Positions 17,801 to 35,800 are shown, counted from the stretch's first letter. The stretch is DNA of 64,000 bases from Octopus sinensis (GCF_006345805.1 NC_043001.1:104470001-104534000); one strand, 5' to 3'. The notes: a model not told the origin generated them from the letters alone. Made by a program: numbers and translations.

Positions 17801-20800
17801 CTTGGCCTTTGAAGTATTCATCTGCTAGTTTCCTGCAAAAGAAAAAAACAAATTTTCATCACAACATCACAATCATCATCATTATTTCTACATCAGCTCA
17901 CAAAAAGAACCATTACAGAACTGTTTATGTTTGTACATTTTATTATTTTAATCTAAATCTAGAATTTATTTGAATAGGTCTAATCTCCAGTTTTACTTTT
18001 TATAATTGAATCAGGGCAAAATGAAGACAGACCAGGTTGAGATGACAATCATGTTAACTGACAGATCTTGCAGATTTAAACAGGATTATTAAATGTAATG
18101 GTATATGTCTTTACATGACTTTGTAGTGCAGAAGATTTTAAAGACATAATTTCTTATACATTATATATTATTTGTATTAAAATTTCAAATTTGTTTTCAA
18201 TTTCAGCTTCATAAAAATGAGACACTTACATCAAAAAGCAATCATGATTGGCAGATGATTATATCCAAAGTTTGATGTCATCATCATCAACATCGTAATC
18301 ATCATTTACTATCTGTTTTCCATGCCAGCATAGGTTGGATTGTTTGACCAGAACTGGCAAGGTGGGGAGCAGCAACAAGCTCCAGTCCCCTGCTTTGGCA
18401 AGCTTTCTACAGCTGAATGCACTTCCAACCACTTTACAGAGTGCACTGGGTGCTTTTGAAGTGACACCAGCAGAGGTACATCTTACATGGCACCAGGAAA
18501 GGGGAATGTTAATTTTAATCAGAGTTTAAAATATTTATTGTTCAATTCATTTCAATGTGAACTCGGGAAAGAAATGATCTTGAACTGAAAATTCTCCCCT
18601 GTTTCTGTTCTGTAGGTGTATGGAATAGGTTTGAGCCTTTTGTCTTACAGTTAAATACATACAAACAAAAATGTTGCGCAACCAGGACTTACTGAAGTTG
18701 AAATACTGAACAGAGATATTTCATGTTGTCTCATATCAACAATGTCATGGCTTCTCTTATTAATTCCTACATTTATATTTCCTTATATCATTATCATATT
18801 TATACATCACAGTCTCCTCGTAATGCAAAGTCAAAATCAAACTTAAGCAGAATATTATACAATCACTCACTTGGCGTGTTTGCGTCCAAAATCTTCTGGA
18901 TAATCATTCACTTCCTTCAAAAAATCTTTATATTCCTAGAAAAATTACAATACAAGCATTTGTTTTAACTTTATAATAAAAACAGTGATTTGATATTAAT
19001 AGTTCAATTTTTGACTGGTTTCGACTCTTCAATGAAACAAAACACTACCTGACTCAGAGAAACACTATAGAAAAAACAACTAAATCTTTTCTCTATATAT
19101 GCTAATTTCCAGTAAAGAGCTGAAATCATTGACTAATGGGGAATGTTACCTAACTTGAGAAGTGATGCACTAAAGGGATGTAACATAATACTACAAGGCA
19201 CTTCATCTTACACAGTCAACTGATTTTGATATTCCTTTCTTAAAAAGAAGATTCTATGTAGTCACTAAAATATAGCAACAAAATCTCCCTTAAATCTTGC
19301 AAAAAACTAAAAGGTGTGGCTGTGTGGTAAGTCTATTAATTTACATTTGAAAGGTGGAATGGGTATTTCTCCTACCAACCACAAACTCTACCTCTGCCTA
19401 TCACCTGAAATATTATTTCTTGTCTTATGAAAAGATGAGAAAGCTATGTTGACGTCAGCACGATTCTGAAATTCAGAAATTCAAGAAAGGTGTTATGTTG
19501 TCATTTGATCTGCTCAGCTAAATCTTCATCAATTATCATCATCATCATTATCATTTAAAGTCTGTTTTCCATGCTGGTATGGGTTGGACAGTCTGACAGG
19601 AGCCGACCAGGCTCCATTCCTCTATTTTTGAATGGTTTCTACAACTGGATGCCCTTTCTAACACCAACCAATTTATAGAGTGTACTGGATGTTTTTATGC
19701 ATGCTCAGCATGGGCGTGTATATGTGGAATTGGACTGGGTGGATGTTATATGGCACCAGCACCCATGAGCCTCCAAGATTACAAATGTTCAGCTAGAGAA
19801 AGGTGCAGTGGGCATGCCTGTATGCAAGGACAACAACACCTCTACTTAGCTTGATGTGTCTTGTCAAGCACAGCAAACCACCGGGAGCCCTGGACCTTGT
19901 CATTCCCTCTGTGAGACCCAACTTCTGAAGATACTCTCTCACCAATTCATCTCACATCTTCCTGCCTCCCATGCCTTCCACTTTAAAAGTGTTATAAATA
20001 ACGTTTTCTGGAGGGGCAGGTTAGTTTCCATTTTAATTAGGTAGTGCTGCGTGTTGCTTGACCTTAACATCTGAAGGAATAAACAAATGGATGAAGAGGG
20101 AACTGTTGATTTGGTCCAAGTGCATGAAGGTGAGAGATTTCATGCTAAAGGCACCCAAGAAGCAGATGGGGGTGTTAAACTGGGTGGCATTAAAAGTTTG
20201 TAGCCAGTTTTCTGCTACTGGTGCTATTGGTGGTGGTGATGCTTCTGTATACACACCTATATTAAAAAAGGAAGGTGCCTCCCCATACACACAATGATTC
20301 ACCTTCGAAAACAAAATGATGCTAAATCTAGAAATGACTGTTAAGGGCTCCGGCTGCATGAGATAAAACAGATGAAAGATAACAAGTCTGTGGTTAGGAT
20401 GCTTGTCTCTTTCAACTCACATTAACAGAGGATCTACTAACTTATTTCCAAAATCTACACAAACTCAATATGCTGCCTCATACAAAATAAATAAATAGTG
20501 AGAACTGACCTTGTCATTTCCAAAATGACTTTCTGCTAGATTTCTGCAAAAGTAAAAAAGAGACATACATCACCCATCAACATCACGATCATCATTTTTA
20601 TGTCGCTAGAAATAAACAATCATCTCACGAAATTCTCAAAGCTAGAGGATAAACCTTGATCAATTCAAAATTATGTGAATAAAGTAATCTGATTGCTAAA
20701 TGTTTAATCTGTATATTTTTGTAGTATTATCATATTTAATGATGCATATTTTTATGTCCTTGTAGACTGTATTATTTCCAAAATACAACTCATAAGGATC

Positions 20801-32800: not shown

Positions 32801-35800
32801 ATACATGTATATATGTGCATGAGCATGTGTGTATATATATTTATTGTTTTTTGAAATTAGCTATTTCATCTTTAAATATGACAAATTAAATATATTAGGT
32901 TTTCATTATATACAATCGTTTATAGAGTTTATTTTAGATCTTGATTATATATATTTTCATTGATAATTCAAATATCTATATAAGTAGATATAGACTAAAA
33001 TGGATATTAGCATATGGATTTTCTACCTTATAAATTAAAGTTAATATTTAACATTATAGTCGATTTCGATATAATCATATTCAATAATAGAGTTTATTAT
33101 AAGAAAATTTTTATTTAGATTATATAGATATTTATATCTTAAAAATATTGATTATATTTTAGGTTTTGAAACCACCTGAAGAATGTCTCAAAGATGTGCT
33201 GACACGAAACGATCGTAGTAGTTATTTACAATTGTTAAATTTTAATTTATATAAATTATTTATGTATTGGCTTAAGTCTTTCTTTGTTTGATTTGCATAA
33301 TAGTGGTTCTGTCTCTAATTCAATATAATATATATATATATATATATATATATATATATATATATATATATACATACATACAACAGGGCATTGGTCGGCC
33401 CGGGGCTATAGCAGAAGACACTTGCCCAAGATGCCACGCAGTGGGACTGAACCCTGAACCATGTGATTGGTTAGCAAGCTATTTACCACACAGCCACTCC
33501 TGCGCCTCCACACAACCACTCTTCTTTTTATTTTTATTATCAGTCACAGTGCACATGAATGTTTTACATTCAGAATCAATGTTCTTGATAACTGGTCACA
33601 ACCAGTTTCCTTAGATATCAAGGACCTTTCTTACAATCCTTGCTCTTTCTAATACAGCAGATTTCAGAATTGATGCAATTCTTGTAGTTACACAAAACTC
33701 AATAAGAGAGCCTTTAAGTCTGTTGGTGATGACTGAGATTATTGGTTGTTCTTAGTTAATAATTTTATTTTTCTTTAACTTTGTCCCACCTTGCTTCTCC
33801 TTACCTGGCTGATTGAGGTAGCCAACTACCTCCTCTATAGTATGACAACTACCTCTGTCTCTCTATCATACACTAAACTCTTGCCAGCCATATCCCTCGA
33901 TTCCACTCCTTCACTCAACTAGGAACCCATTAGCAACCCCACTTGCGCTGGTGCCACGTGACAGCACATATGGCAGTGCCATGTAGGAAGTTCCCATGCG
34001 ACTACCACATAAAATACGCTGAGTACACTCTGTAAATAGTTGGTGTTAGGAAGGGCTTCCAGCAGCAGAGACCATGCCAAAACATACAAATGGAGACTGC
34101 TGTGGCCCTCCAGCTTGCCAGTTCCTGTCAAACCATCCAGTCCATGCTATTAAATGATGATGATGATGGTAATGATGAAACTGATTACACAAACAAAGTC
34201 TTTACTTGTAAGTCAAAACAAGGTCCTGTTTTACTTTTTATAATTGAATCAGGGCAAAATGAAGACAGACCAGGTTGAGATGACAATCATTTTAACTGAT
34301 AGATCTTGCAGATTTAAACAGGACTATTATATGTAATATAATCTTTACATGACTTTGTAGTGCAGAAGATTTGAAAGACATAATTTCTTATACATTATTT
34401 GTTATTTGTATTAAAATTTCAGACTTGTTTTCAATTTCAGCTTCATAGAAATGAGACACTTTCATCAAAAGGCAATCAAGATTGGCAGATGATTTTATCC
34501 AAAGTTTGAGGTCATCATCATCATCATTAAACATTTGTATTTCATGCTAGCATAGGTTGGACTGTTTGACTGGAACTGGCAAGGTGGGGAGCTGCAACAG
34601 ATTCCAGTCCTCTGCTTTGGTGACGTTTTTATGGCTGAATGCACTTCGTAATGCCATCCACTTTACAGAGTGCACTGGGTGCTTTTGAAGTGGCATCAGC
34701 AGAGATACATCTTACATGGCACCAGGAAAGGGGAATTTTAATTTTAATCAGAGTTTAAAATATTTCTTGTTCAATTTATTTCAATGTGAACTGGGGAAAG
34801 ACATGATCTTGAACTGAAAATTCCCTCTTTATTCTGTTCTCCCCTGTCTCTGTTCTGTAGGTGTATGGAATAGGTTTGAGCCTTTTGTCTTGCAGTTAAA
34901 TACATACAAACAAAAATAGTGTATGAAAAGTTGCGCAACCAGGACTTACTGATATTGAAATACTGAACATAGATATTTCATGTTGTCTCATATCAACAAT
35001 GTCATGGCTTCTCTTATTATTTCTTACATTTATATTTCCTTATATCGTTATCATATTTATACATCACAGTCTCCTCATAATTCAAAGTCAAAATCAAACT
35101 TAAGCAGAATATTATACAATCACTTACTTGGCTTTTATGCTATCAAATGCTTTTGGATAACGGTTCACTTCCTTTTCAAAATCTTTATACTCCTAAAAAA
35201 GGTTACAATAAAAGCATTTGTGGTAATTTTATAATATAAGCAATGATTTGATATTAATAATTCTATTTTGGACTGGTTTTGACTCTTCAATGAAGCAAAA
35301 CATTACCTGACTCACAGAAACACTACAGAAAAAAAACAACTGAATCTTTTTCTCTATATATGCTAAATTCCAGTAAAGAGCTGAAATCATTGACTGATGG
35401 AGGATGTTGCCTAACTTGAGAAATGATACATTAAAGGGATGTAGCATAATACTACAAGGCATTTCTTCTTGCACTGTCAACTGATTTTGATATTCCTTTC
35501 TTAAAAAAAGATTCTATGTAGTCACCAAAAGATAGCAACAAAATCTCCCTTAAATCTTGCAAAAAACTAAAAGGTGTGGCTGCGTGGTAAGTCCATTACT
35601 TTACATTTGAAGGGAGGAATGGGTATTTCTCCTACCAACCACAAACTCTACCTCTGCCTATCCCCTGAAATATTATTTCTTGTCTTATGAAAAGATAGAA
35701 AGCTATATTGACCTCAGCAGAATTTTGAATCCAGAAATTCAAGAAAGGTGTTATGCTGTCATTTGATCTGCTCAGCTACATCTTTGTCAACTATCATCAT

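Follow-up and report, generated by a model that had tools for sequence, protein, structure and literature searches.

Why should the small exons of a gene differ more from copy to copy than the introns between them? This question is raised by a stretch of 64,000 nucleotides of Octopus sinensis DNA (NC_043001.1:104470001-104534000, hereafter called the window), which is an internal stretch of the single minus-strand gene LOC115212235, 310 kb in length, whose product XP_036358878.1 is an uncharacterized protein of 1,935 residues. A preliminary description of the window had reported that the exons of this array evolve about six times faster than their own introns, had taken this for a sign of diversifying selection and had added that intron-biased gene conversion could contribute. 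We find that the inversion of exon and intron divergence is real and that the process named there as a contributor would be its main cause: the exons keep their orthology, the introns have nearly lost it and form a mosaic of ages. The introns have probably been homogenised by in-register gene conversion, with selection on the coding sequence barring the replacement of whole exons.

Exons as islands of divergence in a tandem array

Self-comparison of the window revealed direct repeats on the kilobase scale, with 84–97% identity, over all 64 kb. Both segments of the pair that headed the preliminary description, the a exons 18871-18935 and 35128-35192 with their adjoining introns, are homologous stretches of one tandemly repeated unit. 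The exons of this unit are small open segments on the minus strand, flanked by polypyrimidine-AG acceptors and GT donors, and follow each other in gene direction (descending coordinates) as a module of four, namely a' (59–62 nt), b' (34 nt), a (56–65 nt) and b (34 nt). The a-type exons open at a codon start and end two bases into a codon, the third base of which is given by the b-type exon; one a+b pair encodes a two-helix repeat of 31–33 residues and one 192-nt module encodes two such repeats. The window holds 18 exons, all with AG/GT sites and conserved phases, and 17 of them are open in frame, the chance of which is about 10^-6 as judged from random windows of the same strand. XP_036358878.1 was reached via a fragment from Octopus bimaculoides that was matched by the conceptual splice product, followed by an exhaustive HMMER search, and it contains 14 of the 18 exons verbatim, spliced exactly as predicted.

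The four hand counts on which the sixfold figure had been built were reproduced exactly. The two a exons of the headline pair differ at 16/65 positions, with 8 of 21 residues replaced as had been stated, whereas the adjoining intron (18701-18870 versus 34958-35127) differs at 7/170; the b exons at 17799 and 25814 differ at 5/34 and the a' exons at 15620 and 45171 at 14/59 positions. All 18 small minus-strand exons turned out to be islands of divergence, while splice sites and phases are maintained along with the hydrophobic core, also in agreement with the preliminary description. What did not stand is the size of the effect: the sixfold difference is a local extreme because it was drawn from a particularly similar 170 nt, and over the whole 2.2-kb alignment of the same pair exons and introns diverge by 0.246 and 0.097, respectively, a difference of 2.5-fold. 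In 20 long paralogous alignments, 271/935 exonic (0.290) and 1936/20720 intronic positions (0.093) differ, and for all O. sinensis paralog pairs with flanks of ±300 nt the distances are 0.342 for exons and 0.103 for introns. The usual ratio of exon to intron divergence is about threefold between paralogs and 1.7–1.9-fold between orthologs. Intron distances were taken from counts based on high-scoring segment pairs; a forced global alignment of the flanks inflated the distances where homology ends.

The contrast between exons and introns is apparent in the multiple alignments of all four exon classes. In about half of the 20 long alignments, the exon window is more diverged than every intronic window of 34 nt, and in most of the rest fewer than 6% of the intronic windows reach its divergence. 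The islands start and stop at the splice sites, where a divergence of about 30% drops to a few per cent in each of the four classes. Boundaries of this kind imply some selection on the coding sequence.

Codon-level tests and the second octopus species

Diversifying selection would account for these islands if the modules had been duplicated recently, at the age read from their introns, and if positive selection as known from immune, venom or gamete-recognition loci had then driven the exons apart. The codon signature of such selection is absent. The Nei-Gojobori method yields a pS of 0.351 and a pN of 0.344 over all paralog pairs, and in three alternative sets of eight non-overlapping pairs the comparison of pN with pS gives P = 0.57–0.68, so that the excess of dN over dS on which the preliminary description had staked its reading is not found. 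In the same three sets pS amounts to 0.30–0.37 as against 0.09–0.11 in the flanking introns (P <= 1e-5). The minimum number of changes per column under parsimony is 0.227 for introns, as compared to 0.754 for codon positions 1+2 and 0.746 for position 3; likewise, 16/58 four-fold sites (0.28) differ, as do 33/155 codons that specify identical amino acids. Since silent sites are about three times as diverged as introns, selection at the level of the amino acids cannot be the source of the contrast, and since the whole exon including its silent sites is raised about threefold, either the exons are older than the introns or a process acts exon-wide. A CpG or other substitution-spectrum cause of the fast exons was ruled out, as the spectrum is ordinary, with transitions and transversions at 40:27 in exons and at a ratio of 1.23 in introns.

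Some counts nevertheless lean the other way. Crude parsimony finds 92 nonsynonymous to 16 synonymous codon changes at a neutral synonymous fraction of 0.25, and for paralog codons with a single difference the omega-like ratio is 1.5; the splice-site boundaries of the islands would also suit diversifying selection, and conserved core positions mean that the variable positions change faster than average. Cruder counts that ignore multiple hits lean to an excess of replacements in general (omega-like ratio 1.5–1.9), and they undercount synonymous changes in codons whose amino acid also changed.

As a second species we used O. bimaculoides, whose lineage is placed about 34 Myr apart from that of O. 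sinensis in a preprint (10.1101/2023.05.16.540928) that cites Jiang et al. 2022 for this date. A 35.8-kb locus of this species, L001, is syntenic with the window from about 26,000 down to about 3,000 and carries the same exons in the same order, one of them lying in an assembly gap. The comparison covered the 64-kb window and about 36 kb of O. bimaculoides sequence, with introns pooled at ±300 nt. Pooled distances of exons and introns are 0.200 and 0.105 between orthologues, 0.349 and 0.120 between cross-species paralogs, and 0.348 and 0.095 between paralogs within O. bimaculoides. After Jukes-Cantor correction, the ratio of the orthologue distance to that of cross-species paralogs is 0.50 for exons (confidence interval 0.34–0.65) and 0.86 for introns (0.75–0.97), and this order was reversed in 0/2000 bootstraps. 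Hence, the identity of each exon predates the species split, whereas the introns have nearly lost theirs. The exons group by orthology and not by species, with class b as a partial exception, since the class b exons of units U2, U1 and U-1 of O. sinensis are nearer each other (0.15–0.18) than their orthologues. Within either species, paralogous introns are at least as similar as orthologous ones (0.103 and 0.095 versus 0.105).

The ages of the introns vary from place to place. The a-to-b intron of U1 beside the headline exon (18000..18860 on the minus strand, 860 nt) is homogenised within O. sinensis: it differs by 3.9% from the U3 copy (50804-51660) and by 6.3% from the U2 copy (34238-35117) as compared to 9.8% from its orthologue (Fisher P = 1e-6 and 0.009, respectively). 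In O. bimaculoides, the flanks of the b' exons of two units differ at 15/378 positions (0.040) and the exons themselves at 10/34; by eye, each of these two exons matches a different exon of the O. sinensis protein, at 7/11 and 6/11 residues versus 2–3/11 crosswise. Intron blocks compared between U2 and U3 range from 0.013 to 0.122 (heterogeneity chi-square P = 4e-31), and six of seven other unit pairs tested are significantly heterogeneous. A 1.6-kb block of the introns that is related to LINE elements (42464..44049, not assigned to a strand) is only 1.3% diverged from its U3 counterpart at 56491-58090, as compared to 8–12% for the blocks next to it in this unit pair, a mosaic such as recent conversion would leave. 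Taken together, the local intron data constitute patchy concerted evolution after speciation that is confined to introns.

A tandem array is a place where reads of different modules might be merged during assembly or polishing, so that introns would look alike and exons stay separate. The O. bimaculoides assembly has many gaps and a 274-nt stretch that is 100% identical between units, and one O. sinensis exon carries a frameshift of the homopolymer type. We consider such an artefact extremely unlikely as the origin of the contrast, however, because the same contrast is found in two independent assemblies, the introns still differ by about 10%, which is enough for unique read placement, and each of the four exon classes shows an abrupt shift of divergence at its splice sites. 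The 274-nt identity itself, which joins positions 7417-7690 and 16627-16900 of L001 in different units, may be an artefact of gap filling or repeat collapse and calls for caution on paralog similarity in that assembly.

The orthologous exons also bear on diversifying selection. Their omega is about 0.71, and codons with a single hit comprise 11 synonymous and 23 nonsynonymous changes (neutral synonymous fraction 0.256, P = 0.43). Orthologous exons differ at 67/356 positions (0.188) compared to 775/7065 (0.110) in deep intron, that is, more than 300 nt from any exon (P = 2e-5). This excess holds for replacement sites (pN 0.174, P = 0.001), so that dN does lie above intron divergence between the species, but silent sites exceed the introns as well (pS 0.233, P = 0.005, 15.5 changes). 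The excess of orthologous pN is a point that still speaks for diversifying selection; against it stand the near equality of pN and pS in all tests, with pooled as with independent pairs, an acceleration of third positions and four-fold sites that matches that of positions 1+2, an ortholog omega of about 0.7, distinct O. bimaculoides orthologues by which the exons predate the age read from the introns, and some paralogous introns that are younger than the species split. The suggestion of an immune, venom or gamete-recognition locus likewise found no support; the protein contains UBA-like domains and by eye shows no hydrophobic signal peptide. We therefore regard diversifying selection as an unlikely cause of the islands.

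Probable homogenisation of the introns and the age of the exons

From the orthology kept by exons and nearly lost by introns, and from the mosaic of intron ages, we infer that the molecular process is conversion and that the exons escape it because of selection. In this process, gene conversion or unequal crossing-over between modules in register would overwrite the introns repeatedly. Such exchange would hold the identity of paralogous introns at about 90% or more (96–99% in places) and would have been ongoing since the split from O. bimaculoides. The exons, being older than the split, would not have been overwritten and would stand out as sharp islands with about 30–35% divergence at all codon positions. 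Conversion tracts that replace a whole exon, and with it 8–10 residues at once, would be removed by selection; the islands end at splice sites, unlike the outcome of a purely mutational process, so that selection must remove whole-exon tracts. Two reasons for this selection are plausible, either a need for neighbouring repeats of the helical array to remain unlike each other or the co-adaptation of adjacent hairpins. The mismatch-rich heteroduplex at an exon probably also ends tracts. With conversion as the main cause, selection is needed only to keep the exons from being overwritten.

Instead of being homogenised, the introns might be held by purifying selection, for example on splicing enhancers or on RNA structures that serve the recognition of exons of 34–65 nt. 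Between the species, intron within 300 nt of the exons differs at 0.085–0.088 and deep intron at 0.110, and some splicing-related constraint thus exists near the exons. A GAT-rich tract lies upstream of all b and b' exons and is the sole intronic segment that can be aligned between both classes, and one 340-nt intronic block is 96% conserved across paralogs and species, both of which would be in line with constraint. Yet the near-exon effect amounts to about 20% and is far too small for a three-fold contrast, the similarity between paralogs spans kilobases and includes transposon debris, and blocks that are 1–6% diverged within a species are 9–10% diverged between species, which constraint cannot explain. 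Purifying selection on the introns is hence a very unlikely substitute for homogenisation.

The homogenisation of introns leaves one result unaccounted for, and several points weigh against it as a full explanation. Orthologous exons are 1.7–1.9 times as diverged as deep intron; since homogenisation within a species cannot lower the divergence of introns between species, something extra must act on the exons, for which weak positive selection at variable helix positions, micro-conversion between exons and sampling are candidates. An ortholog omega of about 0.7 indicates weak constraint per residue, which is not easily reconciled with strong selection against the replacement of exons. The pooled distances of paralogous introns are close to and not clearly lower than those of orthologous introns, homogenisation being patchy, and the evidence for individual conversion tracts with a given donor and acceptor is indirect only. 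Furthermore, the O. bimaculoides locus has gaps (5,651 N) and repeat collapse could exaggerate paralog similarity there, and the comparison comprises one other species with about 25 kb of orthologous sequence.

The extra divergence of orthologous exons would be explained if, atop intron homogenisation, an exon-specific turnover raised the rate at all codon positions, be it micro-conversion among the at least 30 diverged paralogous exons or another mutational process focused on exons. The excess at silent (pS 0.233, P = 0.005) and nonsynonymous sites alike is what such turnover would produce, although it rests on small numbers with the 15.5 synonymous changes. Differences often come in runs of 2–4 adjacent bases, but a hand count shows only a small excess of adjacent differences, with 17 observed versus about 12 expected, and the substitution spectrum in exons is ordinary. 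Traces of exchange may be seen in the motif GACTTT, which by eye is common to the U1 b exon of O. bimaculoides and the U3 b exon of O. sinensis, in YFKG/YFKD states that are species-specific across several b exons, and in the mutual closeness of the O. sinensis class b exons of U2, U1 and U-1. Frequent exchange should, however, erase exon orthology, which is retained. On this balance we hold exon-specific turnover to be improbable.

A further possibility, which we rate as quite unlikely, is that the array is a built-in diversification device, in which homogenised introns allow about 16 modules to stay aligned for recombination, variants are passed around among more than 60 microexons by short templated exchanges, and neighbouring repeats that differ are favoured by selection, resulting in faster-than-neutral evolution at every codon position. 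If this were true, the 1.7-fold excess of orthologous exon divergence, silent sites included, would be its footprint, in-frame skipping of 192-nt modules would add isoform diversity, and the product would be a lineage-restricted giant scaffold protein.

The protein, its introns and comparable loci

Residues 427-1442 of XP_036358878.1 consist of about 32 alternating repeats of two types, and repeats of the same type share about 30–60% of their residues. Conserved positions are I/F, A, L, A, Y/H and F, followed by Y, F/L and L/V, at a spacing as on two amphipathic helices. Prediction by AlphaFold2 with 11 in-register paralogous segments gave an all-helical model with two helices per repeat (pLDDT 72), as compared to a poor model from the single sequence (pLDDT 57.6). 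A Foldseek search of the former against the PDB returned nothing with E <2 and only matches at chance level. Searches of Pfam with the concatenated repeats and with the whole protein gave no family for the repeats, and none of the known helical repeat families (TPR, nebulin, ankyrin, HEAT and others) showed a profile or fold match to the 31–33-residue repeat; a likeness to TPR or nebulin in particular has no profile support. The N-terminal 370 residues, which are encoded outside the window, contain UBA-like domains (Pfam UBA_4 with 33.8 bits at a cut-off of 21.8, UBA_8 with 29.3 bits at a cut-off of 26), no PDB relative of the N-terminal region was found, and inspection by eye of the N-terminus gave no long hydrophobic stretch and no obvious signal peptide. 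We ruled out that the repeats are degenerate UBA-like domains, as hhalign against the protein's own UBA-like segments gave a probability of 0.2%. The tail is rich in Ala/Glu/Lys, and a SEP-like impression of the C-terminal region gained by eye was dropped after Pfam gave no match at E up to 1 and phmmer against the PDB gave nothing. The exhaustive HMMER search with the O. bimaculoides fragment found 3 proteins of 1.84 billion representatives at E <=0.001, 2 of them from Octopus. A scan of the window against Rfam gave no family, and the literature searched has no mention of the locus. The 34-nt b and b' exons are microexons in the sense of being no longer than 51 nt with conserved flanking intron, and nearly the whole gene consists of microexons for a predicted helical repeat with no Pfam or PDB match.

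All 18 exons of the window lie on the minus strand, and all b and b' exons among them have 34 nt and, except for the first, encode 11 residues. In gene direction, U4 contributes a b exon at 63698..63731 (12 residues, AG/GT sites, open) and an a' exon at 62445..62506 (62 nt, 20 residues). These are followed in U3 by b' at 53553..53586, a at 51672..51727 (56 nt, 18 residues), b at 49072..49105 and a' at 45171..45229 (59 nt, 19 residues). U2 comprises b' at 37033..37066 and a at 35128..35192 (65 nt, 21 residues), both intact, and b at 25814..25847, the orthologue of which lies at L001 1094-1127. The a' exon of U1 at 21990..22047 has 58 nt, with a 1-nt frameshift and an in-frame TGA, and an intact orthologue of 59 nt at L001 7009-7067; the unit continues with b' at 20510..20543, a at 18871..18935 (65 nt, 21 residues) and b at 17799..17832. 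U0 holds a' at 15620..15678 (59 nt, 19 residues), which differs at 4/59 positions from its orthologue at L001 14367-14425, b' at 11099..11132, and a at 9672..9736 (65 nt, 21 residues), which differs at 11/65 from its orthologue at L001 20624-20688. The last exons in the window are those of U-1, b at 8304..8337 and a' at 5756..5817 (62 nt, 20 residues).

The RefSeq model goes from the a' exon ending at 45229 straight to the b' exon at 20543, and one whole module is missing from it, comprising the three U2 exons (37066, 35192 and 25847) and the frameshifted a' exon (22047); one member of the headline pair, 35128-35192, is thus intact yet outside the annotated product, a caveat on that pair. In the a' exon 21990-22047 an A-run is one base short (GAGAAC versus GAGAAAC in the paralogs), which leads to the frameshift and could be either an assembly error or a real pseudo-exon. 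The model avoids this exon by skipping the whole 192-nt module. Gene models of the O. bimaculoides locus (P0001 versus P0003/P0005) join different sets of modules, and one of them splices the b exon at L001 22082 to an a' exon that lies about two modules beyond it. Since a module measures 192 nt, skipping it keeps the reading frame, and alternative use of modules is possible.

Several sequence features accompany the small exons. The GAT-rich purine tract is present at all 34-nt exons, about 25–60 nt upstream of every b or b' exon and before the polypyrimidine tract (e.g. 17850-17900 and 11150-11200, minus strand); the same exons have UGC beside the acceptor AG (mostly as TTGCAG), and their donor, GTTAGT, is unusual in having U at +3. 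Tract, UGC-AG and donor may be splicing signals for microexons. The block of about 340 nt lies between a' and b' exons (11511-11850, copies at 39528-39870 and 54108-54471, and L001 24851-25231) and is 96–97% identical among three units and 96% identical to O. bimaculoides (13/321 positions differ), the surrounding intron being 9–12% diverged between species; it gave no Rfam match, by eye is not coding, and its conservation looks like constraint rather than conversion.

The large introns hold fragments of LINE-type reverse-transcriptase open reading frames (28172-30357 on the minus strand, 6886-7326 on the plus strand, and 42464-44049 / 56491-58090). The latter two share 98.7% identity, and their identity to the copy at 28.5–30.1 kb, which has the reverse orientation, is about 71%; window positions 28,000-30,000 are the most GC-rich part of the sequence (0.48). 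At 26407-26910, 27078-28145 and 30530-30891 with 32976-33337, the 9-kb intron of U2 further contains an (AT)256 microsatellite, a 67-nt satellite in about 12–15 copies and a 363-nt inverted repeat with 98% identity, whose arms lie about 2.1 kb apart.

When compared to already characterized loci, the array most resembles primate opsins. The LW (red) and MW (green) opsin genes undergo gene conversion in their introns, similar to RNASE1/RNASE1B and RHCE/RHD; the similarity of paralogous introns equals or exceeds that of orthologous ones, exons cluster by orthology, divergence peaks on the exons and is low in the introns between them, and the accepted explanation is ongoing conversion with selection keeping the exon differences (PMC3924837). 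The octopus locus shares this signature of young introns and exon orthology. Unlike the opsin cases, which involve two or few whole genes and few known functional residues, its units are internal four-microexon modules of one gene, and the islands occur at all 18 exons of 34–65 nt within 64 kb.

The major histocompatibility complex (MHC) provides a second likeness. Its class I/II genes have homogenised introns and divergent peptide-binding exons in which silent sites are raised too, and in the octopus array the intron lineages are likewise young, the exon lineages old and synonymous sites of exons raised along with replacement sites. In the MHC, however, the alleles and loci concerned are subject to balancing selection and their binding sites show dN > dS, whereas the octopus repeats lie within one protein and have dN close to dS. 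Exons more diverged than introns under positive selection are known from conotoxins, crotaline phospholipase A2 and NPIP/morpheus, families in which dN lies greatly above both dS and introns and whose products are secreted or recently expanded; the octopus exons differ from this class, as dN and dS are about equal and both above the intron, and the exons predate the similarity of the introns.

In the tandem KRTAP1 genes the pattern switches at the boundaries of the coding sequence, which was attributed to short-tract conversion and selection (bioRxiv 10.1101/282418). The abrupt switch exactly at coding boundaries in a tandem array is common to both loci, but KRTAP1 is the mirror image of the octopus array, since its coding regions evolve in concert while the flanks diverge normally. 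For tandem-repeat proteins such as titin with its Ig domains, it has been proposed that neighbouring domains are kept dissimilar to avoid misfolding (PMC4660218). This may offer a reason for selection against identical neighbours in the octopus array, with the reservation that titin domains have about 90 residues and fold independently, whereas the octopus repeats are 32-residue helical hairpins, for which misfolding is putative.

The locus adds a new, unusually clean example to an evolutionary pattern that is already known. As a multi-exon case it illustrates that exons more diverged than their introns look like the product of positive selection and may also arise from conversion that spares the exons, and that synonymous sites together with one outgroup species can tell positive selection from the rejuvenation of introns. 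It is unusual in that the effect occurs inside a single gene, at each of 18 tiny exons, and is bounded by the splice sites; the locus is hence well suited to measuring in a natural setting how long conversion tracts are and how strongly selection acts against exon replacement. At the same time, the analysis characterises a so far unstudied 310-kb gene that was found only in Octopus among the proteins searched (3 matches, 2 from Octopus).

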